Shown here one piece after another: positions 22,633 to 60,426 of a stretch of DNA of 64,000 nucleotides. Numbering within the stretch: position 1 is the first letter of the stretch; each line of letters begins with the position of its first letter. Source of the DNA: Ramazzottius varieornatus. Taxonomy: Eukaryota; Animalia; Tardigrada. A model generated the notes under the pieces. The model did no database searches. It was not told the origin of the DNA and saw only the letters and a list, made by a program, of their open reading frames with translations. Location of the stretch: assembly GCA_001949185.1 (NCBI GenBank), contig BDGG01000007.1:62001-126000 (forward strand), in the 5' to 3' direction. The translations under genes were made by a program, and so were the position numbers.

Positions 22633-29421
<6,789 letters not shown>

Positions 29422-32038: not shown

Positions 32039-34901
32039 CTATCTGATACTTCCGTAATCATTGTTGCTTTGGTTGAAAAACACGCCAGTAGGCTGTTGCA
32101 TTGTGGTGGCTTCATCATAGTCCGGAAGTTCTCCCAGATTGTCCCTCGTGGGATAGCCTGGTTTTATCAAATGACTAGTCTCTTCGGCCTGAGCTTCCCT
32201 GTCGGAGCTCGCTTTGATAAGGGACGGGAACATCCTGTGCGCTGGCTCGCGCAGACGACCACAGTCCACCAGTAGTATCAGTGCAGCTATGATGGAAAAT
32301 GCAAACAGAAGACCCGTTGCAATTTCGGCGATCCGTACAAAACCGTATTCGAAGTAAACCACACTTCCAATAATAGCGCCAAGCGCGTCCCTAAAGCAAG
32401 GACAGAAAAACGATCATCACATGTAGTTTTTTAAAGTTCCTTCCTGTGTTGCTTTTACTGACCCAATGTAGATAGTCGTGAAGAACACGGCTAGGATCAA
32501 GGCATAGGTAGCGACATTTTCCTCCAGTCCACATGCACTACGAGGTTGAACGATGCACTATGTGCTTGATGCGAGAGAAGCTGGGTGTCGAAAGTGAGAT
32601 TACATACATGGCACGTTCCTTCAACGTGTCAAATACGAGTACTGATCCAAACGCGATGAAAACGTTCATGATGAAAAGTAGAAGGGTGACCAGCCAGAGC
32701 AGCCTGTAGGATGATCAAGTAAATGAAGTTCCGACGCAATTGTGAAGTAGCGGCTTACCGGGGTGGTATAAAGGTGAAAGACGGAATAGGTCCCAGGAAC
32801 ATACAGCATATGGCCACACCCAGTGGTGCCAGGACAGCCCAGCGGTAGTCAACGTGGAACTTGAGGAAGATCCAACCGAATATAGGAGCTGTCCCGGCGT
32901 AGGCTAAGAAGGCTGCGGCGAAGATCAGTCCTTCCACCTGGGCACCGCACCCAAACTACAGAAAGCTGACGAAGTGTTGAACATCCAATATACACCCCGA
33001 CGGTGGAGAAGCTCTTACGGATGCCAGGTAAGGTTCGAGTGATGTGCCGAGTACTCCCCAGAACATCCCTCCAGAAAAATTGACAAAGGCCACGCCCAAG
33101 AATATTCTGTCGGTCAACGCGCGTTTTGTCTCTCGGGGCTTTGGCCGTAAATTGATACCTTGAATCAAACATTACAACTGGCCTTCTTTGCATGTACGGC
33201 TGAGTATGAGTTGTTTCCTACCCGTAATCTGGACAAGGAAGAAATATCCGAGAAAACCTGTCAGAAGCAGCGACAGACCGATGAAGGCGCAAGCAGCGCT
33301 GAATCCGCCAGCCTAAGATATAGTTCGCCTCGTTAGATGATGAATATTTGGAATCTAGCATGGACGAATATTTTTATGAAAAAAGCTGACCGCGTAGAGA
33401 GCCCCGCCTATGATAGGACCCACTGTGTAACCGATGCCGACGAAACATTCCAAAATTCCCTGCAAAGCACAATGAAGTACAGTCTACTGGCTGAGACTTT
33501 TGTACTATGAATAACTTACAAACGCAATAGTCGCGTGTTCCGGGAAGGCCAAACAGGTGATGACGTTGGATGACGTGGACAAAGCTAGAGAAAATTAGGA
33601 GCAGAAAATTAGATCGGCGGAATCTTCTTTAATCGGGAAGGAGCTCACTTACTGGCGTACACAAACCCTTCCACGAACCGGAGTATCGTGGCACAGGACA
33701 CGAAAGCTGCTGTCTCTTCGGCGATATTAAGAACCCTGGTGAGGAAAAACTGGTGATCTTTTGATACCGTCAGTTGGATTATCACCTGCTTACGCGTATG
33801 ATAAATAACATGCCGCACCGACAAACGAGCTGATACAGAAAGATGTTCTCGTTCCCAAAAATGGTATCTGCAAGCAATCATAAGGCCTTTCATACTACGA
33901 ACTCCCTTTGATGTGCTGAATATCCCTGTACAGTGTACACGCACGACGAGATGTTATGGGCCAGTAAAACTTATGGACCAGGCCTATTCGTAACGGCGGC
34001 ACGGGCAGGGGATTCTTGCTACAAGTACAAACCAACATCGAAGGCCGCACTTCTGCACGCACGTGCTGGAAATTGAGCCAAGGAGATAAAACTTGTCGTA
34101 TTAGCATTTATTGTGTGGTATCTTCGACATAACGTAGAACGGTGCTGGGGCGAAAGTTTGAAAACTGGAGCTGCTTCGCGTAGTCCCATTCCATCCTTGA
34201 CAGCAAATAGCGCATCCCTCAGGGCTTCTTCGGTGTTTCATCGAGGCTGCTTGGTCCTGAAGGGCTGGACATTCTGAAAACCTTTACGGAAAGGATACCG
34301 AGACAACGAGTCCAGAGCTTTTCCGAGAGAAAGTTGAATAGCCATGCACAGCAGCGTTGAAGTGTAAGAGTGAAACAGCTGATCGGCTGACGGCCACTGT
34401 CCATGACAATTACGGTTGAACTTTTCCTGCGCTACGTCATTCGTCAGATTTCTGTTGCTGGATTTCATAGAAAATGTGAATTTGCCGTCTTTTCCGCCTG
34501 GCCCATAATATCATGTCGTGCGTGTAGTGTAGTGTAAGAACTATCCAACCGGAGTCTGCATACGCACAATTTTGGCTTGAAATGGTTCAAAAAGGATGAT
34601 GGATATGGAAAACATGGCGAAGATCAGTCCGATGTAGGCGTACGGGATCTCTTTAACGATAATCTGAAAAAGTGATTCCGCATAAGGTCGTTATTAAAGT
34701 TCTCGTCCATTGACCTACGGTTCGCGGCAGGATAAGCGGTACGCTGGCTTCCGCCATGTTAATAAACAAGCTGGAGCAACATCCGGCAATCAAGATGAGA
34801 ATTTGAGATCGGCTGAAGCGTGAGCGACCGGTGCGCTCGCTATCCATAGGCAAAGTACCGGCTCCTGGGGCGACACCTTTCTCGTTCTGCAGATTCTCCA
34901 T
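32039..34901 (-). CDS. MFS transporter, SLC18B1-like (vesicular polyamine transporter family), multi-exon
   Basis: Spliced TM segments YIGLIFAMFSISIILFEPFQAKI|IPFLG, ILRFVEGF, AFPEH, GILECFVGIGYTVGPIIGGALYA, SLEPYL, GLIFAAAFLAYAGTAPIFG and MFLGPIP. These resemble SLC18B1 (LETFSGLG..LGP..GG.LY; LLGPVP). The junctions I checked are in frame. Confidence 0.75.
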
Positions 34902-35729
34902 GCTGTCATAAAAAGAGAAAATCGGTAAATTTTAGCGTAGGATCTGCAGCTGTTATGAGTCCGTTCTCGTAATCATGCAGTACACCTAGTTTTACGGTAC
35001 TTACCTTTGTGCTGATGGCCGACTTCTTCAGCAACATGTGCTATCAGCCCCACCGAAATAGTCCACCTGATGGAGCGTTTTTAGGAGATAAGTCCAGAAC
35101 AGCAGATAGCCGGTTGCAGGTTCAGTTTCATTGAGAATCAAGCGAATTTACCGGATCAAGGCACATTGAGTGCCGTTCATCGAAGCCTGCTCGTCTAGTG
35201 CAGCTGGAACAGTGGAAGTAAATCCCACAGGAAAGAGTGCACGGCATTTGCTAGCCCAAGGCGGCAGCACGCCGAAGGACCGCAGGCTGATTTCGTGTGT
35301 GGCGTAATAATTCTGCACATCATAATACCAGTTGTTGGTTTACAGTACTAGGTGCATGCAAACTTTAGCCAGGCCACAATAAATGGGTTTCGGCAGCACA
35401 GTTTCCGGAACACTGACTAACTTGATAACACGATTGTTCCGGAATCGATTTTGAAGTTTTGGCACCCCAGGGGCAGTCTTCAACTGCTAGTGCGATCTAG
35501 TATAATAAACATCGAGCAACCAGATTGTAACTTCCATTCGACCGTCTGACCAGTGGCCAGCTGGCTACGTCGGGAATGCCTAAAGGGGTACGAATTTTTA
35601 ACTGAAAAAGTTTTGACGTCACAATGCCCTCATGTCGCATGAAAATACGTAGGTGGTCGTTCTGGTATCACACCCCCTGGCGGGGATGTTTCAGTTATTG
35701 GTTAACCCTAGAATTTTCCAGAGTGTCTT

Positions 35730-35850
35730 CCCAACAGGGCGAACAGTTTGCTGAGACTTTGAGCCGCGGCGAGGTACGGCAAACTTACCATTCCCTGACC
35801 CTTGATGTTCCCTCGGACCTCACGTCAAAAAAGGGTCATTTGGCAGCAAA
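35730..35850 (+). repeat. Dispersed host repeat, second copy at about 51020-51090
   Basis: GAGACTTTGAGCC(G/A)CGGCGAGGTACGGCAAA(C/T)TTACCAT occurs at both sites. Boundaries approximate. Confidence 0.7.
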
Positions 35851-37126
35851 AATGAGTTTCCGGAAATCGGGCAGCCGAAACCCAAATGCGGATACAATCT
35901 GCAATATACCCAGTATTCGTAGTGCATGTCGTAATCGTGCATAGTTTCCGTAGAATCTTCGGAGTTCTCGCGCTCAACACTTAAAAGACCACGCAGTTCC
36001 AGGCTCTGGGATTACAAGGGGGACAGATCACCTTCCCCACTTTTTAACTGGCTGAAGTCGTGGGGCGGGGTCAAATCGGGTCAATCACCACATTTACGCT
36101 CCGCATTTTTTGGGTAAAATGCGCCACCTAGTGAATCGAGGTGCCAGACGTATGTGATTTTGCTCTGACCACTGACCTGAGGCATATTATAGCTTCTAAG
36201 ATTGTATCATTGTATTCGCTTTGTTCCCAATTTTTAAGAAGGCTTTCCGTCAGCCAGGTCTTGAGTTCAACTCAAGACGAAATCTGGCCGAAAACAGAAA
36301 ACGTTTTGGAAATTTCCAGAACGCTTCCAGCTAGTGCCCGTCTCCTTGGATTACTAGGAAAAATCTTTCCGAAAGCGAAGGTGGAAATCCGAGGGGAAAA
36401 GGTTCAACAAGAACCATTCTGCAGGGTAAGTAGGGTGCGCCATGCAACCGGGGCACCCCCTGGTCTTTTGAGTGTCAAGTCCGCGGAAGCTGCATGGCGA
36501 CAGGAAGATATCCCAATGCGTCATACTGTGACGATGCAGTTACCGATAAGGGATGAAATCTCAGACTGCAACAGCGGCGCTATGTCTTCGACAGTGAGCA
36601 TCAGCTGATTCCTCATCCGCATACATGCACATCAGAATTGCGTTTTTCACGGTCGCGCGTATCAGTATTTGACTTTGGAGCTCGTTAATGCTGGGTCGTT
36701 AAACTGAAACTAGTGCTCGGATGCCAAAAATCTCTTCTGCCGTGGCAGATGACCTGCGTACGCTGGACGATATGCTGTCAAAACGTGTACCGCTGAGACC
36801 GGATATCATCAGAGCATTTTTCAGGATCGCGGAGCGCAGAGATCTAGTGTTCGAAGTTCAAGTTTTCTGACAGGATAGGAACTGAACCTCCCGCCTCTTT
36901 AGCTTTCTTGAGTTGGTGAGTTGAAATCCTGTATTTTACCAGTCAACTTTGGTGGCGCTGCCGATTTGTTATTTAATTACCGAGAACAATTTTCAGCAGG
37001 GAACTCAGAACAACTTCCCAAGATCGATGCTCGGAAAGACGTGGTTCCAAACCACCGAGCTCATCGCTCGTGGATCCAGCTGTTTCTAGGAGGGGGACAG
37101 CGAAAGAATTGGCACCTGTCTCGAGG

Positions 37127-38131
37127 ATGCAGTGCCACCCCTTGACAAGGCCGTGCGGGATGACCAAGCCACCGCCTGCCGAATGGGCCCGTCACGAGGC
37201 AGTTTGGATTGGCTTTCCAAGCCACCAGGGGCTGTGGTTGAATGACCTTGCTCCGGCCCGTAACGAAGTTACGGCGTTCGCGCGCACGGTTCACGCCGGC
37301 GGACGAGGCGAAAGGGTGCTGCTGGTAGCTGCCGACGAGGAAGCGGCAATTGCCGCGCAGCTGGCCGCTCCCTTCGCCGAGGTTATCGTCTATCCCTTTG
37401 GAGACATCTGGCTGCGCGACACTACAGCCATCATTGACGGTGACGGTACCGGGCACATTTTTCGTTTCAACGGCTGGGGTCAAAAGTATGTCATGCCCGG
37501 TGATGAAACCATTGGGACGTGGCTGGCCGAAGCGTGTGACCGACCAGTGGTGCACCATGATTGGGTGTTGGAAGGTGGGGCGATCGACGGAGACGGTACT
37601 GGACTTGTCGTGCTCACGGAGCAGTGCCTGCTCAACCCGAACCGGAATCCGGGTGCTACGCGGGATGACATTGAGGCGCGACTGGCAGCCAACTTGGGCT
37701 TCAACCGTTTTCTATGGCTGGGCGAAGGACTGATGAATGATCACACCGATGGTCACGTTGACAACCTCGCGCGGTTTGTCGGTGTCAACCGTCTGGCAAT
37801 CCCTGTGTCGGCGGACAGCTGCGATCCCAATTACCGTGTATACAACCTAGCGGCCCAGCGCGCGCAGGGCTTCGGTGTGGAGGTGGCACGAGTTCCTTCG
37901 CCGGGCCTCGTCCTGCGGAACGGACAAGCCATACCGGCGAGCTGCATGAACTTCTATATCGGGAACGTCGCGGTTGTTGTGCCGATGTATGGTACTCCTA
38001 ACGACGATCTCGCGGTTCAAATGTTCCAGTTATTGTTTCCTGACCGTACCGTGGTCGGTTTGCCGGCCAACCACGTCTTGAGTAACGGTGGAGGCAGTTT
38101 TCACTGTATCTCCCAGCAGATTCCGGCGTAA
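37127..38131 (+). CDS. aguA: Agmatine deiminase (PAD_porph family), intronless, bacterial type
   Basis: PAEW, DIWLRD, FNGWG.KY, LEGGAIDGDG.G, TEQCLLNPNRN, DHTDGHVDN, MNF and C-terminal GGGSFHCISQQ with the catalytic Cys. First ATG 37127; family-like start MTKPPPAEW at 37160. Visibly GC-richer than its flanks. Confidence 0.95.
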   Translation: MQCHPLTRPCGMTKPPPAEWARHEAVWIGFPSHQGLWLNDLAPARNEVTAFARTVHAGGRGERVLLVAADEEAAIAAQLAAPFAEVIVYPFGDIWLRDTTAIIDGDGTGHIFRFNGWGQKYVMPGDETIGTWLAEACDRPVVHHDWVLEGGAIDGDGTGLVVLTEQCLLNPNRNPGATRDDIEARLAANLGFNRFLWLGEGLMNDHTDGHVDNLARFVGVNRLAIPVSADSCDPNYRVYNLAAQRAQGFGVEVARVPSPGLVLRNGQAIPASCMNFYIGNVAVVVPMYGTPNDDLAVQMFQLLFPDRTVVGLPANHVLSNGGGSFHCISQQIPA

Positions 38132-38166
38132 AGTGGAATTAAAATACACCGTTCTTACTATCAGTA

Positions 38167-38364
38167 TACGCAGGACGGGAAATTATGGTACAGTAAAAAT
38201 TATGGGACAGGCATTTTCGCTACGGCGGTGCAGAAGCACGTACGTACGCGAACGATTCACAGTAAAACAATTTTTCGACACTTTTCTACGGTCGAATTTC
38301 CAATTTGCCGTCCCTTCCACCTGTCACATAATTTTTAATGTACCATGATTTCTCGTCTTGCGTG
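38167..38364. mobile_element. 198-bp MITE with about 45-bp TIRs and TA TSD, between the two bacterial-type genes
   Basis: TACGCAGGACGGGAAATTATGGTACAGTAAAAATTATGGGACAGG and its inverse at about 38320-38364. A related end lies at 57706. Confidence 0.82.
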
Positions 38365-38777
38365 TACACAGTATCCTCAATAATTCTGACTTTCTTGAAA
38401 TTTGTTATGTAGAGATAACGACTTGCTTGGTAAGTTTTGTATTGCATAATGGGGTGAACTTTCATGGAGCGCCAGCCACTAGAGGTCCTTAAGATGGCCT
38501 AAATGCAACCAGTAAATGCATCTGCGGAAACCAAACAGAAAAAGAAAGTACGAGTAATATTCTGACAGGAAAACAGCAGAGCCACGGTGACTCTTTTCAA
38601 ATCCAGTAAGATCCAGTAAGGTATCCGGCAGTAAATCGATGTTCTTGAATTTGGTTCACGGAAATGAGTCTTCTCCGTTGGATCCTGTCAGAGGAACTGA
38701 TTTTAGTCAAAGTTATCAACCACAGGTTTGTATTGCCGTTACCGTACAAAAAAGTTGCCTGGTTCCGGATAGTGAAT

Positions 38778-39758
38778 TCATTGCCTCAAGACCCACGCGA
38801 ATATCAGCGGCGCCACAATAGTTGCGTCCGATTCGATGACAAACTTCGGAGTAGAAATATCCAGTTTATTCCAAGAAATCTTCTCGTTGGGTACTGCTCC
38901 TGAATAAGATCCGTATGATGTTGTAGAGTCGGATATCTGGCAGAAATAGCTCCACAGCGGTATCTCCTTCTTTCTCAAATCCATGTATATCATGGGCACT
39001 ACACATATTGGAAAATCCCCGGCAATACCACCACCTATCTGAAAAAACCCAACGCCCTTCCCGCCCGAGTTGTTCAGGTACCAATCGGCCAGCCAACACA
39101 TGTACTCAATTCCGCTCTTCATCGTACTCGCGTTCATTTCGCCCATAATGCAGTAGGAAGCAAAGATATTTCCCATAGTTGAATCTTCCCATCCCGGTAC
39201 AACGATTGGAATGTTCTTTTCGGCAGCCGCCAACATCCATGAGTTTTTCGGGTCGATTTCATAGTACTGTTTCAGCTCTCCGCTCAGTAGCATTTTGTAC
39301 ATAAATTCATGGGGAAAATATCGTTGTTTGTTATCGTTGGCATCCTTCCACAGTTTATAGATATGGCTCTCTAGCCGGCGAAAAGCTTGGTTCTCGGGGA
39401 TACAGGTGTCGGTTACCCGGTTGAAGCCATTGTTCTTCAAATCCAGTTCGTCCTGCGGACTCAGGTCTCGGTAGTGCGGCACGCGTTTGTAGTGGGAATG
39501 GGAAACCAAGTTCATAATGTCCTCTTCCAAGTTGGCGCCGGTGCAAGATATGATGGCAATCTTATCCTGTCGTATCATTTCGGCCAGGGAAATGCCCAGT
39601 TCGGCAGTGCTCATGGCACCAGCCAGCGTCACCATCATCTTGCCACCCGCCTCCAGATGGGCTTCATATCCTTTAGCGGCATCCACCAAAGCAGCCGCGT
39701 TGAAATGACAGTAGTTCCTCTCTATAAATTGGGATATGGGACCTCTAGTGCTACCCAT
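38778..39758 (-). CDS. Bacterial-type deoxyhypusine synthase-like protein (putative homospermidine synthase / aminobutyltransferase), intronless
   Basis: 326-aa ORF with HFNAAALVDAAKGY, LAGAMSTAELG, CTGANLEED, NRVTDTCIPE, PGWEDST.GN, QIGGGIAGDF and GSYSGAVPNEKISWNK (catalytic-Lys region). Resembles Bacteroidota DHS-family proteins rather than animal DHPS. Start context GCCATGG. Confidence 0.93.
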   Translation of the reverse strand: MGSTRGPISQFIERNYCHFNAAALVDAAKGYEAHLEAGGKMMVTLAGAMSTAELGISLAEMIRQDKIAIISCTGANLEEDIMNLVSHSHYKRVPHYRDLSPQDELDLKNNGFNRVTDTCIPENQAFRRLESHIYKLWKDANDNKQRYFPHEFMYKMLLSGELKQYYEIDPKNSWMLAAAEKNIPIVVPGWEDSTMGNIFASYCIMGEMNASTMKSGIEYMCWLADWYLNNSGGKGVGFFQIGGGIAGDFPICVVPMIYMDLRKKEIPLWSYFCQISDSTTSYGSYSGAVPNEKISWNKLDISTPKFVIESDATIVAPLIFAWVLRQ

Positions 39759-42642
39759 GGCGATTTGAATGGAACTCCTTGGAACTACACAGACACGTTC
39801 TCACAGCCCACACCACAGAAAAAAGGCTACTTTCGCTGTGTGCCAAAGGAACTTCGCAAGCCGAAAAACGCTGTTGTGCAGGTGGACCGACTGGAGAAAA
39901 TCTGTTTCATTGAGTTCTCTTTCCTCGGACCTCAGCACGGAATCAACGGTGCAGAATTTTGCCTTGGGCAAGCAGATGAATCACCCATGGGAAAGTATTG
40001 CGTCGTCGGAATCCGCTCTCACTCTTCAGCATGGAACCAGCGTGGTTTGCCTTTAGGTCCTGCCCCAGGGCGTATTCGGCACAATAGATTTGAATGATAA
40101 TGGACTAGTTCCCGCTTGGTAAACCGCGATTAACGCCATTAATCTGCGCGCGCCCTGGACGAAAAGCATCTTGCATACAGGCACTCTTTTCAGGCTCAGT
40201 TTTTGATTGGCCATTTAAAAAGTGACGTTTCAGCACGCTTGATGCCTGTGTTGAGTGACGCAGAAGGGCTCGTATCAGATCGTTTAATCGGTCTGACTGA
40301 TACAGGCTTGCCATGTTCGGACTGTTGCCCGGAAGAGGTCACCATACTGCCGCAAACTGCTGACTCACACGGCAGTCTGGTTGCTCTTCTTTCAGTGCAG
40401 CTTGCCTAATTTGTTGGCCGCGTTGTCTCTGCGTTGTTCTTGCTGGCACAGGAACATATGCCACCGTACTACGCTGGCTTGATGCAAGCGCTGAACGAAA
40501 AAGTGAGAAATGCTGTGCGTCGATCGGCTATAACCTTGCAGCTAGGAGATGGCAGCATTGTTCATTACCAGTATTCCATGCGCATTGGTTTTGCATAGCG
40601 GCGGCACCGAAAATAACCGGCGACCAGTCGTATACGTGACAGCCATCCTTTCTGTCGAAAGAATGCATCGTTCATCTTTGGGGAGCTACCTGCTCAAAAT
40701 ATCCTGTGACCACAATTCCGACCATGAATATCGCGTGACCAAAATATCAACTGACTTCTATATTGATAAGCCATGTGACTAACTGACGCAGAAATCGTTT
40801 GCTCATATGGGTGTCTCCATATGAGAATGCGTCCAAAGTTTTTTGGCTTCAGATCTGTCTTTTATGACATCAAGTTTTGCGAAATATCAAACTGCACCAC
40901 AGATTCCATGTGCCGCACTCTGCCGCGGTAATCAGACCGGAACGAACGGCTGCAAGTTATGGAGTTACAACTCGGGAAATGCAGGGCTTTTAAGGGCAAG
41001 TCTTTCCAGTTTGCAGCGTGCTTCAGCTGGAGACGTGCACCAGCGATCACTTCCGGTCCACATAATCGTATCAGTTTCTGCATTTGATTGACCGATTAAA
41101 CGTCAGAGTACACAGCGTGCAAGACCGTTATGCGCACTGATCCGTGCAGCGCTAGATTTTCAGCGCACTCATCTCTTCCTTTTGTAACTCTCGGACCTGT
41201 GGTCGGAAGTTGAATCCGACTCCGATTTGACTTCCCTAGAATTTTTTTAGTGTAAAGTCGCATTTGAGTTTGGCCTGAGGGTGCAGAAACTTCGGCACGA
41301 TCCCCTGAACAATTTGGTCTGAGACCATTCGGACGCATTCTCATAATTATGGAGATACCCATATTCCCGATAGGTGCAATCACAACGCCGATTTCTTATC
41401 GCATCTTGTCCGTGACTTTCGATTCATTCTAGTGGCCGTGACGCTCAAAGATATCCAGAGGAGCTAGCAAGTTCCCATGAGAGGAGCTAACAAGTTCCGA
41501 CAAGCTCGACGAGCGAACGGTGTATCCGTGTATCGTCAGGCAGTGCCATGGCTAATCGAGCGTTATGCAGAACGCGATGTTCTGAGAAGTTCTCGTATCA
41601 CGATCAATGGTCCCGCCTCGTATGCAGCCGGTGAACTTATTATTCCACGACATATTGGAAAAGTGGTAAGTACTGTACTATGACAATCTCCATGATAGTA
41701 AGACGCAAGTATCGGCCCCGATTTGGTATGTTTCCATATTGTTCAAGCTGCCCGGCTCAAATCTCAAATAACAATCCAACTCACCAGCTGCTTCTCAGCC
41801 AGAGATGGCAACGATGTTTGTTTTCTTGGCTCTCGTACATAGAAGAGGGTAATAGGGTAATAAAGCGCCGGCCCCACTCGAACAGTTTTGCTCTATTCTG
41901 TACGATGGTCGGGGTTCGGCGGTCTTCGCATCGGTCTGAAATCACTCTTTTCGTATAACTTGCTGGAGTTTTTTTCAGTTGGGTTCGATCCATTGAGCGC
42001 TACGAAAGCCCTATCTTCAAATCCCTTAGTGTTGTATTGGGAAATCATTTAAGCTTCACTGCAACGTTAACGAGTTGTTCGTGTCCAGGGCTGAACGCGG
42101 GATAATACCACCCGACGCCGCCCACCAAAACCGCAAAGGTGCTGGTTGCTATAGACAGCAGGAAGCCAGATTTCGCCGAAGCATGTGTTAGAGCCCGTCG
42201 CCTGAATGAGCAACTGATAAGGGTGGGGTATTTCAAAGCGGTTACTATACCGGGTTTTCCAACCTTAACATTACATCCTATACTCGGCAGTTACGACTAT
42301 CTTGGTATAACCATGCAACAACGAGTAAGACGGACGCAGTAGCGCCATCAAAGGCTTCCGGGAGAAATCTGGCATGTAACTTGTGTCTCGTACAACTGTT
42401 GTCAACAGAGCACACAGACGCTAATATAAATCGAATCAAGACATGAGCATTGTTAGTTTCCCAGAATTAACATACCGGAAATCATAGAGAGATGGAAGCT
42501 TGTCACCCGCTAAGGTATCGGAATCACCTCGTCGTTCGAGCGAGAAACATGGACGGATTCCCGAGAAGGCCACAGGTTCAGCAGTGGATGCGTGGTAAAC
42601 GCTCTCACACATACATCGTACAAATTTTGCGTCAGTTCGTCA

Positions 42643-43854
42643 ATGTGGTCTTCTTCCGGATTGATGCTGGTGAGTTTAGTGTGGCATTCATACGTGACAT
42701 TCGATCTTCCTAACAAGAAATAAAGCCCCGGACCAAAGGGATTCGAAGAAATCAATCCTGTTCTGGACAAAATGGTTTGGCAGCGAAAATGCTCACCTCT
42801 ACGACGACCTCTCACATTGTCCCGAACCACGTTGTGCAGCTACGAACGACCGTTCGTTGCTTTCCCGGAGTTCCGCCTTGATCTTCCATGCACGCGACAT
42901 GAGCCAGGGATATTCCGGAACAGCGTCAATCGCATCAACAGTACGTCTTTCACTCCACGGAAAGTCCGTACTTATCTCGAGTTAATCTTCGAAAAGGAAC
43001 ATTGATGGATTTCTTCAATCTCACCTGGACCTACCGTACTGATTCTGACATCGTATCCAGTTTTTACTTTCACCCATACCTGTACCGCTTGAAACTCTGG
43101 ACCAACCGCATGGCACAAAGAGATTTTGGCAAAGAGAATGAACCGAGCTGTCATTTTGATGTCGAATTGTGGCGCCAGTAGTAATCGAGACGAATATATC
43201 AAACAGCTGCAACAGTACTTCCCGAAAAACTAACCAACTACAAATTCTACCTTGCGTTCCAAAACGGGTATGATTGTATCATATCAAACACATTAGTCGA
43301 AAATCGGTGCACTGAAACTCGTGCGTTTTTTTTTTAGGTTTCGTAAGGACTACGTGAGCGAGAAGGCAACTCGCACCTACCTGACGGAAGTTCTGCCAGT
43401 GATGCTCGGTGGCGCCAACTACTGCGGAATCTTTCCGCCGCACTCCTTTATTGATACAGCAGACTTCGAGAGCCCGAGACAGCTGGCCACCTACCTGTGG
43501 AAGCTATCAAGGAACCTGCATCTTTACGAAGAGTATTTCGACTGGAAGTACGAAGAACAGTACCTCGCTATTCCGGAGGTGTATCAACCGGCTAAAACGG
43601 ACATGTGTAGACTTTGTGAAATTCTGCATGATGAGGAACGCTTAGATGTTTCTTAATCCTATGAAAATTTGGATGAATGGTGGACCACGGCTTCCCACTA
43701 TTTTGCCCCGTTGTTCAGTTGCCCCACCAAGTCGGCGACGTCGATTGCTTTAACTGTAACATCCGTCTTCTTAGGGTTAGTTCTTTTGTTTAATTTAGTA
43801 TACTTTCGTCACCGGTATCGGTACCGTCTCTGTAAAAGAACAATGGATTTCTGA
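42643..43854 (+). pseudogene. Alpha-1,3-fucosyltransferase (GT10) pseudogene
   Basis: ILFWTKWF, ALIFH, VFHSTESP, FFNLTWTYRTDSDI, MSNC..SNRDEYI, YKFYLAFQN|..KDYVSEK, PPHSFI, YFDWK. Deletion/frameshift near 43225, E>Q and C>R in the FucT motif, stop at 43654-56. Confidence 0.85.
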
Positions 43855-44256
43855 TAGTGAAGTAGATTCATGGAATGAGTTCGCCAAGTCTGATATGACA
43901 AACTGAGATCTTTGGACTTGGCGCTCTGAAACTGCTTTTGCTATGCAAACACCCGGTGTGTGTTCTACAGGCGCTCTTATATTCATAAAGGCGCACACAG
44001 CGCATGGTTCACTGCGCATAACTTTATTACCTTTCCGTCACTCGCTCTCCATTACCACCGGATCCGATCTCCTGCCTCAAGCGATGGGTAGGGTGTTTTC
44101 TTCGAGAAGATGACCACGTGCAAGATCCCAGCGACTACACAAATAAATTAAACCTGGCAGATTCCACGAGATACGTCCTCGGAAGCATTCCAAACCAACA
44201 CATCTCTACATTTCGGACCGTAATTCCCGCTTGCGTACCCCTTGGAGGAAAGTAGC

Positions 44257-45249
44257 ATGATCTCCAAAAAACAGTATCATCATGTGATACGTCTTCTTGT
44301 TGCGCTAATCGCCATTTTTATCTTACTTTTGCTTTGGAACACATCGATTCTGCGATATCACCTCCCATGGCACGACTATCAGTGGACCTTCTCAAGAGGA
44401 ATCCCTGTTCCAGCGTGTTCAGGCACTTCGAATGATTCAGCTGTGACCAGTGCGTCCAACCAGGAAGCAGGTTTGATCGTTCATTACGTTAGACTCTATC
44501 CAGTGCCGAAACCCAACAAGAACGACCATTCATTAAACGTGCTTGATTGCTTGAGCGTCTACTCCGTCTTACTGAACCTGAAGCCTCAGTCAATCTACCT
44601 GCATACTAACGTTCCTTCCTTTTGGCCATTCGGCAACTGCGAATCCCTCCTGGAGTTGACGATTGATTGGTCTCTTGTCAAAGTCTTTTGCGCTCCCTTA
44701 CAGTACACCTCTGGCATCAAGCGCATCGCCCACATTGCACACGAAGCGGACATTCGCAAGTTTAGAGCCGTGGAAGAATATGGTGGATTGGTGCTCGACT
44801 TTGACGTGTACGTCATCAACGGTGTACTACTGCGCCAGTTGATAGAAAAGCATCCTTGTATCGTTTGTCACGAAGTCGATAGGCTAAATGCGGGGTTTTT
44901 CGGTTGTCGAACCAGGCAGGCGGAATATCCGAAGCTGGTGCTGGCGTCGTACCATGCTAAATACAATCCATATTGCTGGCTGTGCAGTAGCGGTTACGAA
45001 CCATTCGAAATTTGGAAGAAGAACCAGGATACTGCATCGGTGATTGCGGGAGTTTGCGATCATGAAAGTGGAGTGGTTGAAACTGAAAACTGGGCGACGT
45101 TGCCAGCCTTTCACTCGTACTGGCATAGGAGCTCGTTCACGGTTCAGGACGTCCGACAATTGAGGAGCACTTTGGGCGATGTTCTCCGCTGGCTTCTGAA
45201 AGATGCTCCTTCAGATTTAGCTGGTAAGGCTATCCCGGTGGAATGGTGA
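44257..45249 (+). CDS. Type II membrane DxD glycosyltransferase (GT32 / alpha-1,4-glycosyltransferase-like), paralog 1
   Basis: N-terminal TM; HEADIRK...YGGLVLDFDVY; single-exon ORF; closely similar to 46176-47174. Confidence 0.82.
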   Translation: MISKKQYHHVIRLLVALIAIFILLLLWNTSILRYHLPWHDYQWTFSRGIPVPACSGTSNDSAVTSASNQEAGLIVHYVRLYPVPKPNKNDHSLNVLDCLSVYSVLLNLKPQSIYLHTNVPSFWPFGNCESLLELTIDWSLVKVFCAPLQYTSGIKRIAHIAHEADIRKFRAVEEYGGLVLDFDVYVINGVLLRQLIEKHPCIVCHEVDRLNAGFFGCRTRQAEYPKLVLASYHAKYNPYCWLCSSGYEPFEIWKKNQDTASVIAGVCDHESGVVETENWATLPAFHSYWHRSSFTVQDVRQLRSTLGDVLRWLLKDAPSDLAGKAIPVEW

Positions 45250-46175: not shown

Positions 46176-47174
46176 ATGTACGCCAGAAGACGTTACAAGT
46201 ATCTGATGATATTCCTTGCGGTGCTTGCGGCATGCTTTATTTTCTTGTTGATTTGGAATACGACACTTATACAGCGGCCTGAGCAGCCGTGGCTAAATTA
46301 CCAATGGACATACTCTAGAGGAGGGGACCGAACTTCGTGTGCGACTGCATCGAACGTGCCTCCCCCCGGAAACGGGTTAATCGTTCATTACGTCAGGTTC
46401 TATCCAGTGCCGAATCCCAATCAGAAAGACCATGCACTGAACGTCCTGGATTGTTTCAGCATCTATTCCGTTTTAGTCAACCTAAAACCTCAGTTGATCT
46501 ACCTACACACCAATGTTCCGTCCTTTTGGCCATTCGTCACCTGCGAATCTTTACTGGAGGTGACAATTGATTGGTCCCCTGTCAAAGTCCTCTGCGCACC
46601 ATTCCAGTTCACCGTCAGTGGTAAACGCATATCGTTGATCGAACACGAAGCCGACATTCGGAAGTTCAAAGCTGTGGAAGAGCACGGAGGTTTAGTGCTG
46701 GACTTTGATGTGTACATCATCGACGGAACACTGGTGCGCAATTTAATGAGGACCAATCCCTGCATCATATGCCACGAAGGAAGCAACGGTAAAGTCAATG
46801 CTGGGTTCTTCGGCTGCCGAAAACCACACTCTGCGTATCCGCGCCTTGTGCTGCAAGAGTCGTATGAGAAGAACTATAATCCCATTTGCTGGGTTTGTAA
46901 CAGTGGGATAATCCCCATGACACTACTAGAGAAGCACGCTGACACGGCGGTTATAGCGGACAACGTCTGTACCGCGCCTAACTTTTGGCAAAAAGAGGAT
47001 TTCAATTCGAGAAGGGATAGGTACAATTGGACGAGCAAGCCCGCCTATCATTCTTACTTTCACAATTCCCGTTTTAGTTTGAAGGATGCGAGGAACCTTG
47101 AATCTAGTCTAGGTGATGTCTTTCGATGGATACTCAAAGGCGGTCCGCCTGAACTAATGGGAAAACAGAACTGA
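46176..47174 (+). CDS. Type II membrane DxD glycosyltransferase (GT32-like), paralog 2
   Basis: N-terminal TM; HEADIRK...HGGLVLDFDVY; single exon. Confidence 0.82.
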   Translation: MYARRRYKYLMIFLAVLAACFIFLLIWNTTLIQRPEQPWLNYQWTYSRGGDRTSCATASNVPPPGNGLIVHYVRFYPVPNPNQKDHALNVLDCFSIYSVLVNLKPQLIYLHTNVPSFWPFVTCESLLEVTIDWSPVKVLCAPFQFTVSGKRISLIEHEADIRKFKAVEEHGGLVLDFDVYIIDGTLVRNLMRTNPCIICHEGSNGKVNAGFFGCRKPHSAYPRLVLQESYEKNYNPICWVCNSGIIPMTLLEKHADTAVIADNVCTAPNFWQKEDFNSRRDRYNWTSKPAYHSYFHNSRFSLKDARNLESSLGDVFRWILKGGPPELMGKQN

Positions 47175-57752: not shown

Positions 57753-60426
57753 CGAGGGAGAGGTTATTGAGTTAGCCATAAGAACCTTCGGTTGTTGAGT
57801 TAGCCACCTGTTTTCGCCCGTTCTATCTGACGTATTCTAACACATGCTTGGATGATTCGACAGAGAAAATGACGGGCTGTCCAATGGTACTTCTTGCGAT
57901 GGGCTCAAGTTCTCAATGCATGCACAAGATCTACAGTTCGGCAAACTGTCAAACCCCATGTTAGAGAGCCTGGACCAAAAATGAAACTAAGGCCACCAGA
58001 GGCGCTGGCGACGCGGTTTTCAATGACAATAAAGATTATTTTTTTCACTGCGAGACCAAATTTCGTACAGCAGTTTTGTTATCAACTCTGTCGGAATAAA
58101 CAGGGCGTCTCTCAAGTTGAAGACTGCACCAGAGGTCCATGCGCAGTTAACAATGCAAGCAGTGGTTCATACGGTGAGAGAAATGGGATGGGAAATGCGG
58201 AAAACTGCGGAGGCGTACGGACTAAACCGGCAGCCGCTGGACAAGCGGTTGAATGGTCGACACACCGAAGTCATGGAAAACAGCCCAGAATTCCTCCCCA
58301 CGAAGAAAATGCCCTGGAAGATTCACTGTTGAGCTGTACAGATACTGGGATCCCCCTTAACCGACAACACTGTGCCGCAGCAATCAGTGAGATGAGTACT
58401 CGACTTGGTAAGGTGATTTATCCCAATGTTAAGGTAATATTCGAATTTTGGTCAGCTCTTATGGATTTCCTTTGTTTTTCCAGGCCTGATCCACACAACG
58501 ATCAGCACTTTCAAAGATTCATCAAGCGCCATCCACAACTATCATTACGAATAACCCATGCCAATAACCGAAAGAAGGAACGAAAGTGGACGCACGAGCT
58601 GGCGGACAGGTACATCGCTAAATTGATGGAGCTTCATAACGAAGGATTCCTCGACGAGCCAGATCAAGTTTGGAACTTGGAAGAATCTGCGTTCAACACG
58701 GCCGAAATGTTCGATAGAGTCGTTGGACGGAAAGGAATGAGGCAAGTTTACTCCCAGTACGACGGAACAGAGAAAGAATTGGTGACTATCCTACCTTGTG
58801 GCAACGCTTCTGGACTCCAGCTTCCTTTTATGGCGCTGTTCTCCGGAAAACGTCACGTTCGATCTCGTCTGGATGGCACAGGTGGACACTGCTATCATGG
58901 TGTGAATGAGTCCGGCACTATGGATTAAATGCATTTCGCAAGCTATAACAAGTCGTATTTCCGACAATGACCAAAATGAAGGTAAGAAATCTAATAATAC
59001 ATGAGTTGCGCAGTACATCGTTAAGCATTCGTCTGTTGGGCTTGCTGGAATGCAGTAGTTTTGATGTATGACGTCATGCTTACTATAATTTTAGAATGCG
59101 GTCTTCGTTGATGGACACTTCTCCCATATCAACAACTTCACTCTGATGAAATACATCAAGGAGTTCGAGGCGGAAACCGGAGAGATCGTGTACGTCTTTG
59201 CCTTACCTGCTGGCCAAACCAATCATCTGCAGCCTTTTGATGTATCCGTCTTTGGGCAAGTTAAAAGAGCATGGGGAGATTATTTAAGGCATCGCCGTGT
59301 TGTTATTGGAGGACTGGTAAAACTTTGGTCCTTTAAATTTCTGTGGAATCTACCTAACTAATGTTCCGTTCTGTAAAATTCAGGTCACCAAGGATAATCT
59401 GCTCTCTCATCTCGTCAAACTGTGGTTTCAGACTGAAGAGTGCTCGCCGCAGCACTTATTCAACCCTGGGCGGAATCTTACCTCTGGATTCCAGAAATCG
59501 GGACTCTTTCCTTTCAATCCTGAGGTTATTCGTGCGACTGTGAAGACTCAAAATTGTCCTACCCCTCGATGAGACGGCGGACTCCGCTCCGAAAGACTAT
59601 CGCTCCAGCTTTGACCGTTTGGCTGACGTTTTGATGGCTGAATTTGACGTCGCCAGCCAAAAAGATCAAAGACATCACAGAATTCATCAGGCTCAAATAG
59701 CGAGGTGTAACTCCAGATGCTGTTCTAGCATCTCCGCTGCAAGCCTCGCTGTTTGCTGCTGCGCCCAAGAAAGTCCGTCGCGAGACGAACGAGCATCTGA
59801 ACCTCGACGCTGGAGGTTTAACCAACGAGGAAAATTTCCAGTCCCATCTGGAAAAGAATCGAGCAGCAAACAGAGCAAGAACCGCCTCTCTAGCAGCCAG
59901 TCGAAGGGCGACAGCAAGCCAAGCCAGAATTCGACACGCTCCAGCTGCTGTTCCCAAACCTCCGAAAATCGCTCCGGGTAGAAAGCCCCTTTCGGTGAAG
60001 CGAAAAGCGTCGGACAAGGAACCAGACCCGAACCCAAGTGAAGTCTTGAACGCACGTGCCGTACAGCAACAGAAAACGACTAAAGCTTCTAGCTAGAATA
60101 TTCATGCAGGTTCCGCTGTTTTATCTAGTAGCTTACCTGAGTGTTCTGTGGATAATATCTGGTGTCAAACGAAGTGTTTTTATAGGACGATGATGTGTGG
60201 GTTTCAGTTCTGCGATGGGCATTCCGGTCAAGAAAATGTTCATTCGGCTCTCGAAATTATCAGCCTTTATAACAGCGGTATGCGCCTCGTACGGCAGTTC
60301 AGAAGAGCGGTATTGATTCTACCGCGATTTTTGGCTATTGCCCTGGCTGTCGGCCACCACATACCGCAGCGGTGGCTAACTCAACAACCGAAGGTTCTTA
60401 TGGCTGACTCAATAACGTCTCCCTCG
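57753..60426 (+). mobile_element. pogo/Fot1-like DNA transposon, about 56-bp TIRs, TA TSD, defective
   Basis: TIR CGAGGGAGAGGTTATTGAGTTAGCCATAAGAACCTTCGGTTGTTGAGTTAGCCACC and its inverse. TA at 57751-52 and 60427-28. Confidence 0.92.
58117..60050 (+). pseudogene. pogo-family transposase (psq-type HTH, CENP-B HTH, DDE_1), intron-containing, inactivated
   Basis: MRKTAEAYGLNRQPLDKRL, VWNLEESAF (first catalytic D appears as E), VTILPCGNASG, FVDGHFSH, LPAGQTNHLQPFDVSVF. Frameshift near 58270; stop at 58926-28. Confidence 0.85.

Follow-up and report, generated by a model that had tools for sequence, protein, structure and literature searches.

Adjacent bacterial-derived iminohydrolase and SpeY-type genes beside an SLC18B1-like transporter gene in the tardigrade Ramazzottius varieornatus: candidates for a chimeric agmatine-to-diagmatine route

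To our knowledge, animals make only putrescine, spermidine and spermine, via ornithine decarboxylase. Do two bacterial-derived enzyme genes and a transporter gene that lie side by side in the tardigrade Ramazzottius varieornatus act together on another polyamine, or are they neighbours by chance? The locus covers positions 32039-39758 of the window, i.e., the whole analysed stretch of 64,000 nucleotides, and comprises three consecutive transcribed genes, with RvY_11889 and RvY_11891 flanking a gene of the agmatine deiminase/iminohydrolase (AIH) family. Open reading frames, profile matches and RNA contigs confirmed all three at the coordinates and in the orientations given by the original prediction. 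The locus has the following features:

32039-35210, minus strand: SLC18B1-like MFS transporter gene RvY_11889, spliced (RNA-contig joints, public record); exons are the 5'UTR at ~35005-35200, 34719-34902 (ATG at 34901), 34568-34663, a next exon starting at 33867, and the last at 32039-32390
33936-34526, unstranded: MITE-like repeat copy in intron 3 of the MFS gene, 29-nt inverted arms (inverted repeat I3)
36750-38197, plus strand: transcript of the AIH-family gene (unspliced RNA contigs, runs X4 and X8)
38164-38373, unstranded: MITE-like element, 48-nt inverted arms, 88% complementary (inverted repeat I2)
38340-39842, minus strand: transcript of the SpeY-type gene RvY_11891 of the deoxyhypusine synthase (DHS) family (spliced RNA contig, run X15)

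SLC18B1 is the vesicular polyamine transporter of mammals. RNA contigs of RvY_11889 have GT..AG joints at 34902/35005 and 34663/34719, and the loose end of one contig maps to 33867, the start of a further exon. The public record P0241 (RvY_11889-2) spans the C-terminal 255 amino acids of the MFS protein. Pfam MFS_1 was non-significant on this record, a homologue search with this partial sequence returned tardigrade fragments only, and its sole PDB match (E up to 10) is SLC18B1 (9d7u, E 4.4e-9, residues 14-171). SLC18B1 thus appears to be the closest relative of RvY_11889 among characterised MFS transporters, as had been predicted; common motifs are present in the C-terminal half and no other solved MFS structure matches. 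The match is divergent, however, and the tardigrade genome contains three SLC18B1-like loci, a family still small, in keeping with the prediction's premise that it is not greatly expanded. The repeat copy in intron 3 reaches a DNA word depth of up to 654, as compared to ~24 nearby.

The middle gene has an open reading frame at 37070-38131 (plus strand) and a coding sequence of 323 amino acids at 37160-38131 without intron. Its start had been placed at a GTG at 37070; the first ATG is instead at 37127 or 37160, the latter being the annotated start. The protein matches PF04371 over profile positions 3-321 of 321 (E 1e-91, 307.8 bits, cut-off 25), HCISQQ, which contains its catalytic Cys, has HCVTHE and HCVTMQ as aligned counterparts in 1xkn and 1zbr, and the DHTDGHVD and DIWLRD motifs of solved AIHs are retained. 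The full-length profile match and the catalytic Cys, His, and Asp place it by sequence in the AIH family. Against TIGR03380, the canonical AguA equivalog, it scores 196 bits, under the cut-off of 381.8, and a Sphingomonas donor-type AIH likewise remains below this cut-off (216 bits). The tardigrade AIH is 66-72% identical to Sphingomonas proteins and nests in the tree among 14 Sphingomonas sequences (clade SH-aLRT 93), which indicates that the gene was acquired from Sphingomonas. Its end branch is five times the bacterial median, and it departs from invariant columns at 2 of 109 positions. It is the only AIH gene in the R. varieornatus genome, and one of the three RNA runs lacked its transcript.

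The coding sequence of RvY_11891 (38778-39758, minus strand) encodes 326 amino acids. It is intronless as predicted, but the transcript is not, as an RNA contig revealed a spliced 63-nt intron in the 3'UTR (38684-38746, GT..AG). RNA contigs in X4 and X8 have a 74-nt skip, and an annotated isoform has 349 amino acids and another C-terminus. Both the score against PF01916 (E 1e-41, 143.3 bits, cut-off 27) and the catalytic Lys, K298 in SWNK, which falls in the alignment on the Lys of the SW(G/N)K motif in DHS structures (K329 in the human enzyme), assign the protein to the deoxyhypusine synthase fold family (DS); W296 and E292 are also retained, and matches to DHS in the PDB have E 1e-5 to 1e-11 at most. 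The protein is 81-84% identical to Pedobacter and Mucilaginibacter proteins (Sphingobacteriaceae type), and its named best matches are all from Bacteroidota, mostly Sphingobacteriaceae, save two records that we take as mislabelled. This DS type was found in none of 301 Sphingomonas relatives. These matches indicate a bacterial acquisition of Sphingobacteriaceae (Bacteroidota) type, so that the predicted bacterial origin holds for both enzymes. RvY_11891 is the only bacterial-type DS gene in the genome; the separate canonical DHPS for which the original prediction proposed a search is present, spliced, on contig C2.

Like eukaryotic DHS and plant homospermidine synthase (HSS), RvY_11891 has the DS fold, the NAD site and the catalytic Lys in SW(G/N)K. 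Unlike these, it does not derive from the host DHPS, and its spermidine-pocket residues differ, with D/F, N, and Y at the positions of human H288, D243, and D316. With Sphingomonas SpeY, the Bacteroidota-type DS protein shares an identity of only ~25%, and it failed every curated SpeY model, with 86-104 bits against curated SpeY/DHS models having cut-offs of 304-500 (e.g., 86 bits vs. 500 and 100 vs. 450); Sphingomonas SpeY clears the curated equivalog cut-off with 550 bits. Among 80 metagenome loci with Bacteroidota-type DS genes, none had an arginine decarboxylase (ADC), ureohydrolase or iminohydrolase neighbour within 8 kb, and the bacterial neighbours were not polyamine-biosynthesis genes. 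The RvY_11891 branch is very long (0.72 vs. 0.033, 20 times the bacterial median). Nine of 191 invariant columns are changed, five of them within residues 105-131 (P 7e-4, in a window chosen post hoc), including the loss of two invariant Glu, E123N and E124Q, at the presumed acceptor loop or entrance.

Both bacterial genes are integrated into the tardigrade genome and long domesticated, and are not contamination, as they are flanked by host sequence, separated by a host MITE and shifted in GC3, one of them has a spliced intron in its 3'UTR, and a second strain has both genes under constraint. Their contig of 2.34 Mb also encodes SERCA, a tyrosine kinase and a fucosyltransferase, and DNA similarity to bacterial loci is limited to 37143-39770. 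The MITE-like element at 38164-38373 sits between the 3' ends of the two genes and has a DNA word depth of 521-1435 vs. ~20. GC3 of the bacterial-derived genes is 0.65 and 0.58. RNA contigs of the second strain, a strain ~1.5% diverged, contain both genes. Between strains, RvY_11891 differs at no more than 7 of 1049 nt vs. 13 of 462 nt of UTR, its coding sequence being four times less polymorphic than its UTR, and the AIH gene has 7 synonymous and 6 non-synonymous changes (pN/pS ~0.28). High identity of both genes to soil and moss bacteria and the GC content of the AIH region, which at 0.59 exceeds that of the window (0.47), could be read as signs of bacterial contamination or a chimeric assembly. 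The likelihood of such an artefact is nevertheless practically nil: single DNA contigs carry the host flanks, the intron is spliceosomal, no bacterial DNA lies outside the two coding sequences, the donors are two different ones, and the second strain has both genes. The AIH and DHS-family genes are independent acquisitions, each about one coding sequence long. Intronless coding sequences, a gained UTR intron, codon amelioration and expression are shared with other domesticated bacterial genes of tardigrades and small invertebrates; unlike in those, two phyla would here supply adjacent pathway steps beside a matching host transporter.

A bacterial pathway offers a model for what the two enzymes could do. 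Bacterial SpeY proteins, homologues of DHS, join two agmatines to diagmatine, and the pathway comprises SpeY (diagmatine synthase), DIH (diagmatine iminohydrolase), and an NCPAH-like amidase (Li et al., J Biol Chem 2026; PMC13625781). Every SpeY homologue tested makes diagmatine, including that of Winogradskyella (Bacteroidota), and every AIH homologue tested turns diagmatine into bis-carbamoyl-homospermidine; the AIH of Rhizorhabdus wittichii, the sole enzyme measured for this property, is diagmatine-specific and inactive on agmatine (PMC13625781). A tie between the Bacteroidota-type clade of RvY_11891 and the tested Winogradskyella SpeY was sought and not established. The originally guessed agmatine-derived or carbamoyl product fits this published route, in contrast to the plant-HSS-like chemistry (spermidine plus putrescine) also envisaged, as bacterial SpeY does otherwise (PMC13625781). 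SpeY is carried by 14 of 14 Sphingomonas genomes in the clade of the tardigrade AIH (in one of them, an incomplete MAG, the hit is a fragment scoring under the Pfam cut-off), and is absent in seven of seven Sphingobium genomes. In a family sample, SpeY occurred in 27 of 29 genomes having an AIH at least 60% identical vs. 28 of 90 others (P 2e-9). If a SpeY-encoding genome context is the mark of a DIH, the tardigrade AIH would qualify through its clade as well as its own neighbour.

On the basis of the SpeY and AIH activities in PMC13625781, the two genes would represent consecutive steps of one pathway. It is tempting to propose that the independently acquired AIH and SpeY-type genes beside the transporter form a chimeric agmatine-to-diagmatine route, a proposal for which we see equal reason for belief and doubt. 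Briefly, the DHS-family enzyme would act like SpeY and join two agmatines, dependent on NAD, to N1,N9-bis(guanidino)homospermidine (diagmatine). The adjoining iminohydrolase would then deiminate both guanidino groups, yielding N1,N9-bis(carbamoyl)homospermidine, which might either remain the end product or be converted to homospermidine by a further amidase. Agmatine could stem from food, microbes, or an unrecognised decarboxylase. The SLC18B1-like transporter, the weakest link, may move substrate or product. Possible but rather doubtful is the more far-reaching proposal of a working two-phylum pathway from agmatine via diagmatine to bis-carbamoyl-homospermidine or homospermidine, with the linked vesicular polyamine-type transporter storing or exporting the product and the acceptor entrance of the synthase reshaped (EE to NQ) to accept a substrate, or yield a product, unseen in bacteria. 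The locus resembles the SpeY-DIH pathway in having a DHS-family and an AIH-family enzyme, the latter from Sphingomonas, a lineage that encodes SpeY in its genomes, like R. wittichii. It differs in its animal host, in its genes being convergent neighbours from different phyla and no operon, in the divergent Bacteroidota type of the SpeY part with its altered acceptor loop, and in a genome that, as searched, is without ADC and amidase.

Searches of the window and of the whole R. varieornatus genome found no aguB-type amidase and, across four folds, no arginine decarboxylase; for the window, this absence had been noted originally. Host CN-hydrolases resemble Nit1, Nit2, NAD synthetase, and biotinidase, and both host ODC paralogues retain the ornithine-type Asp motif. 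The main reading of the original prediction was the classical agmatine route, in which the AIH leads via N-carbamoylputrescine to putrescine and the DHS-family enzyme makes homospermidine from putrescine and spermidine. Such a route is compatible with the DS fold and its catalytic Lys, with the ability of eukaryotic DHS to make homospermidine from spermidine and putrescine (PMC13625781), and with an AIH that shares its fold and intact catalytic Cys, His, and Asp with the aguA-aguB route of Pseudomonas aeruginosa. Yet aguB, the immediate downstream neighbour of the AIH gene in 63 of 80 donor-type loci, either never arrived with it or was lost later, and the AIH scores below the aguA cut-off (196 vs. 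382). Bacterial SpeY homologues, moreover, use agmatine instead of spermidine and putrescine, and RvY_11891 is of bacterial and not host-DHPS descent, with a pocket unlike that of DHS, which makes the classical route improbable. One or both genes could also be decaying or neofunctionalised and no longer make a polyamine; the DHS-family protein, for example, may use another acceptor or have taken on a role other than catalysis. The long end branches, the clustered SpeY changes at residues 105-131 and an AIH pN/pS that is only moderate would suit this view. Both frames, however, are intact and exactly of bacterial length, 182 of 191 (SpeY) and 107 of 109 (AIH) invariant columns and the catalytic residues are retained, both genes are transcribed, and the SpeY coding sequence is constrained relative to its UTR; loss of polyamine synthesis is therefore quite improbable.

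R. varieornatus has 234 putative foreign genes among ~19,500 genes (PMC5034306), so that random placement alone would give about three adjacent foreign pairs. Two unrelated foreign genes might thus have been inserted at, or later moved to, a single permissive site and now work independently, the AIH breaking down dietary agmatine, the DHS-family enzyme doing something else or little, and the transporter being an ordinary host neighbour. The differing donors, the pathway genes upstream and downstream that were not found in the genome, the ~1.5 kb between MFS and AIH starts (RNA contigs), and the convergence of the AIH and DHS-family genes, which are thus not co-transcribed, are in accordance with this explanation. 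But the sole AIH gene neighbours the sole SpeY-type gene, for which the chance is ~1e-4 with the SLC18B1-like locus on the other side left uncounted. Given a single AIH, a single bacterial-type DS and three SLC18B1-like loci among ~19,500 genes, the adjacency is more than chance. As AIH and SpeY are consecutive steps of one bacterial route, the AIH donors all carry SpeY, and one of the three SLC18B1-like loci flanks the pair, we consider separately acting neighbours unlikely, although the idea deserves some weight.

SpeY was predicted to necessarily travel with a diagmatine-specific partner (PMC13625781), and the tardigrade pair fits this prediction. R. varieornatus may make a polyamine not known from animals. 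If true, the chimeric route would mark the first case in Metazoa of polyamine synthesis from agmatine and of a diagmatine-family metabolite, with domesticated SpeY and iminohydrolase adding an agmatine-based branch that leads to homospermidine or carbamoyl/guanidino precursors. It would be a rare case of an animal joining genes of two bacterial phyla as adjacent pathway steps beside a matching host transporter, and bears on the origin of metabolic gene clusters in eukaryotes. R. varieornatus is an extremotolerant model, in which one could then look for a possible link to stress biology.

Open reading frames (ORFs), Pfam matches and RNA contigs confirm the three neighbouring genes at the positions given in the original prediction, namely an SLC18B1-like transporter gene (MFS gene, RvY_11889, - strand), a gene of the agmatine iminohydrolase (AIH) family and a SpeY-type gene of the deoxyhypusine synthase (DHS or DS) family. 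The main features of the locus and its flanks are as follows.

24906-29421, + strand: SERCA-type calcium ATPase gene, flanking host gene unrelated to polyamines
33936-34526: second copy of the MITE-like element, within an intron of the MFS gene
37070-38131, + strand: AIH-family ORF, annotated start ATG at 37160, 323 aa, PF04371 matched over its full length (E 1e-91)
38164-38373: MITE-like element with inverted arms starting TACACGC, between the 3' ends of the AIH and DHS-family genes
38778-39758, - strand: DHS-family ORF RvY_11891, 326 aa, PF01916 matched (E 1e-41)
43321-43656, + strand: GT10 fucosyltransferase exon, flanking host gene unrelated to polyamines

Transcript evidence came from contigs of public runs aligned to window positions 34000-39999, three of these runs being RNA because they contain GT..AG joints that are absent from the DNA run. 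RNA joints of the MFS gene skip 34903-35004 and 34664-34718, and the following exon begins at 33867. Its last exons match the public record RvY_11889-2 of Ramazzottius varieornatus (P0241), and the MFS analysis used single exons and this partial record, not a joined exon model. RNA covers the AIH gene at 36750-38197, unspliced, in two runs (none in the third, smaller run) and the DHS-family gene at 38340-39842. Both coding sequences are intronless, as predicted, but the term fails for the RvY_11891 transcript, whose 3'UTR contains a 63-nt intron (38684-38746). Splicing at the 3' end of this gene (38684-38800, - strand) varies, with the 63-nt UTR intron versus a 74-nt skip in another strain, and in the annotated isoform of 349 aa the last five residues are replaced, resulting in a different C-terminus.

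The window (C7:62001-126000 of an assembly of 200 contigs and 55.8 Mb) is typical animal DNA in which long ORFs are scarce, and it also contains a tyrosine-kinase exon. The nearby P-type ATPase was ruled out as a polyamine pump, the gene being SERCA. Two tandem intronless ORFs (44242-45249 and 46176-47174, + strand) encode proteins of 335 and 332 aa that are 55% identical to each other, each with an N-terminal membrane anchor and neither with a Pfam match; they may constitute a lineage-specific family of type II membrane proteins. An additional ORF of 344 aa (57894-58928, + strand) is without a Pfam match.

DNA-level similarity to bacterial loci ends at 37143 and 39770. Genes that adjoin these two in the donors have left no trace around this interval, and no remnant of aguB, the N-carbamoylputrescine amidohydrolase gene, or of a bacterial ODC-like gene was found within the window. 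GC3 of the two bacterial-derived genes is 0.65 and 0.58. The MITE-like family is high-copy in the genome, with a DNA word depth of 500-1400 at both copies versus a background of ~20. The RNA contigs, the limits of bacterial similarity and the MITE evidence together exclude contamination or misassembly. Both genes are also present in RNA contigs of a strain ~1.5% diverged. No more than 7 differences separate the strains over the 1049 nt of the SpeY stretch, versus 13 over 462 nt of UTR, and the listed changes in the AIH coding sequence comprise 7 synonymous and 6 non-synonymous ones (pN/pS ~0.28, with a few changes unlisted). The 2022-2023 RNA runs X4-X14 carry the same organism label and diverge from the reference across 34000-39999, by ~1.5% in total and by 2-4% within UTRs; their source is another strain or a closely related sibling species.

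The two enzymes trace to different bacteria. Sphingomonas proteins share 66-72% identity with the AIH-family protein, which groups with 14 Sphingomonas sensu stricto sequences in an 85-sequence tree (SH-aLRT 93). 'Deoxyhypusine synthase family proteins' from Pedobacter, Mucilaginibacter, Olivibacter and related bacteria share 81-84% identity with the DHS-family protein, and no closer relative was found among 5.8 billion clusters; the protein is placed among Sphingobacteriaceae-type sequences with no resolved sister. A single donor operon is ruled out: the AIH gene nests in Sphingomonas, the tardigrade DS type is present in 0/301 Sphingomonas relatives, and the SpeY of Sphingomonas shares only ~25% identity with that DS protein, which implies two donors. 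We consider it almost certain that both genes are integrated and have independent origins.

Bacterial SpeY enzymes of a range of phyla, one of them from a Bacteroidota species, couple two agmatines to N1,N9-bis(guanidino)homospermidine (diagmatine), a reaction that eukaryotic DHS does not perform (PMC13625781, September 2026). Agmatinase homologues convert this product to homospermidine; with all agmatine iminohydrolase homologues tested, it yields N1,N9-bis(carbamoyl)homospermidine, and Rhizorhabdus (formerly Sphingomonas) wittichii has an AIH that is diagmatine-specific and shows no activity on agmatine (PMC13625781). From these reactions it follows that the tardigrade pair would represent two consecutive steps. 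The original interpretation is partly supported and can be narrowed to an agmatine-based pair of bacterial enzymes; plant-type homospermidine synthesis is not favoured, since bacterial SpeY couples two agmatines.

On the donor side, an AIH homologue is encoded in 119 of 121 sampled Sphingomonadaceae genomes, and SpeY in 55. Where the AIH shares 60% identity or more with that of the tardigrade, 27/29 genomes carry SpeY, versus 28/90 others (Fisher P 2e-9). All 14 Sphingomonas genomes of the tardigrade AIH clade have a DS-family match, one of them a fragment below the Pfam cut-off in an incomplete MAG, and none of 7 Sphingobium genomes has one. In 63/80 Sphingomonadales loci, aguB lies downstream of the AIH gene (median 24 nt). 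Directly upstream of speY, an AR-fold ODC/DapDC-like decarboxylase gene was seen in all four Sphingomonas loci inspected out of the many SpeY-bearing genomes (L100-L103), and the same placement has been described for R. wittichii; presumably it is an ODC turned arginine decarboxylase (ADC).

Catalytic residues are kept in both tardigrade proteins. AIH departs from 2/109 columns invariant across 117 bacterial homologues, and SpeY from 9/191 columns invariant across 110. Several features weaken the proposed reading. Both tardigrade branches are long (AIH, 0.81 versus a median of 0.15; SpeY, 0.72 versus 0.033), and five of these nine SpeY changes fall within residues 105-131 (P 7e-4, for a stretch chosen post hoc). 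The bacterial loop PEEEAF reads PENQAF in the tardigrade and corresponds in a profile alignment to human P172-Y176, which holds the acceptor loop of eIF5A. This alteration suggests relaxed constraint or else a changed acceptor. We infer that the Bacteroidota-type DS clade equates with the tested SpeY of Winogradskyella, partly because homospermidine predominates among the polyamines of Sphingobacteriaceae. The clade scores below all cut-offs of curated DHS and SpeY models (86-104 versus 304-500 bits). Among 80 Bacteroidota-type metagenome loci (L104-L183), no polyamine-biosynthesis gene and no ureohydrolase or AIH gene was found near the DS gene. A PotA-like ABC ATPase (ABC_tran + TOBE_2) is encoded within 5 kb of it in 13 of these 80 loci.

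The C-terminal 255 aa of the MFS protein have SLC18B1 as their sole solved match (E 4.4e-9), with no other solved MFS protein matching up to E 10. A broad search of the genome for MFS_1 yielded 219 first-look candidates, so MFS genes are common overall, whereas the SLC18B1-like subfamily, with three loci, is not; no polyamine or foreign genes were seen adjoining the other two. Transcript starts of the MFS and AIH genes are head-to-head, ~1.5 kb apart. Position alone links the transporter to the enzyme pair, which is suggestive, and its role in the proposed pathway appears rather doubtful. With 234 putative foreign genes among ~19,500 genes in R. varieornatus (PMC5034306), about three neighbouring pairs of foreign genes would arise by chance. 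The chance that the sole AIH gene adjoins the sole SpeY-type gene is ~1e-4, and the presence of one of three SLC18B1-like loci on the opposite side adds ~3e-4; these figures are post hoc. Random clustering is unlikely, even if any 'polyamine-related' gene is generously allowed.

The remaining pathway partners were sought across the genome. No aguB-type amidase was detected (best score 23 bits), the host CN-hydrolase loci reading as Nit1-like, Nit2-like, NAD synthetase and biotinidase. ADCs of the pyruvoyl, SpeD-like or AAT fold were likewise not found, and two spliced AR-fold genes retain the VNDGVYGSF motif of ornithine decarboxylases, which we take to mark ornithine specificity; a search of four folds thus yielded no hidden ADC, both ODC paralogues being of the ornithine type. 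A host agmatinase is rejected, as the sole arginase-fold gene reads as arginase. The agmatine source and the last step are therefore unaccounted for. Our literature search found no paper linking tardigrades with homospermidine, agmatine or this DHS-like gene. We regard it as evenly balanced whether the two enzymes act jointly as proposed; by analogy with the bacterial enzymes, our preferred interpretation is a putative chimeric SpeY-plus-iminohydrolase module that would act on agmatine.
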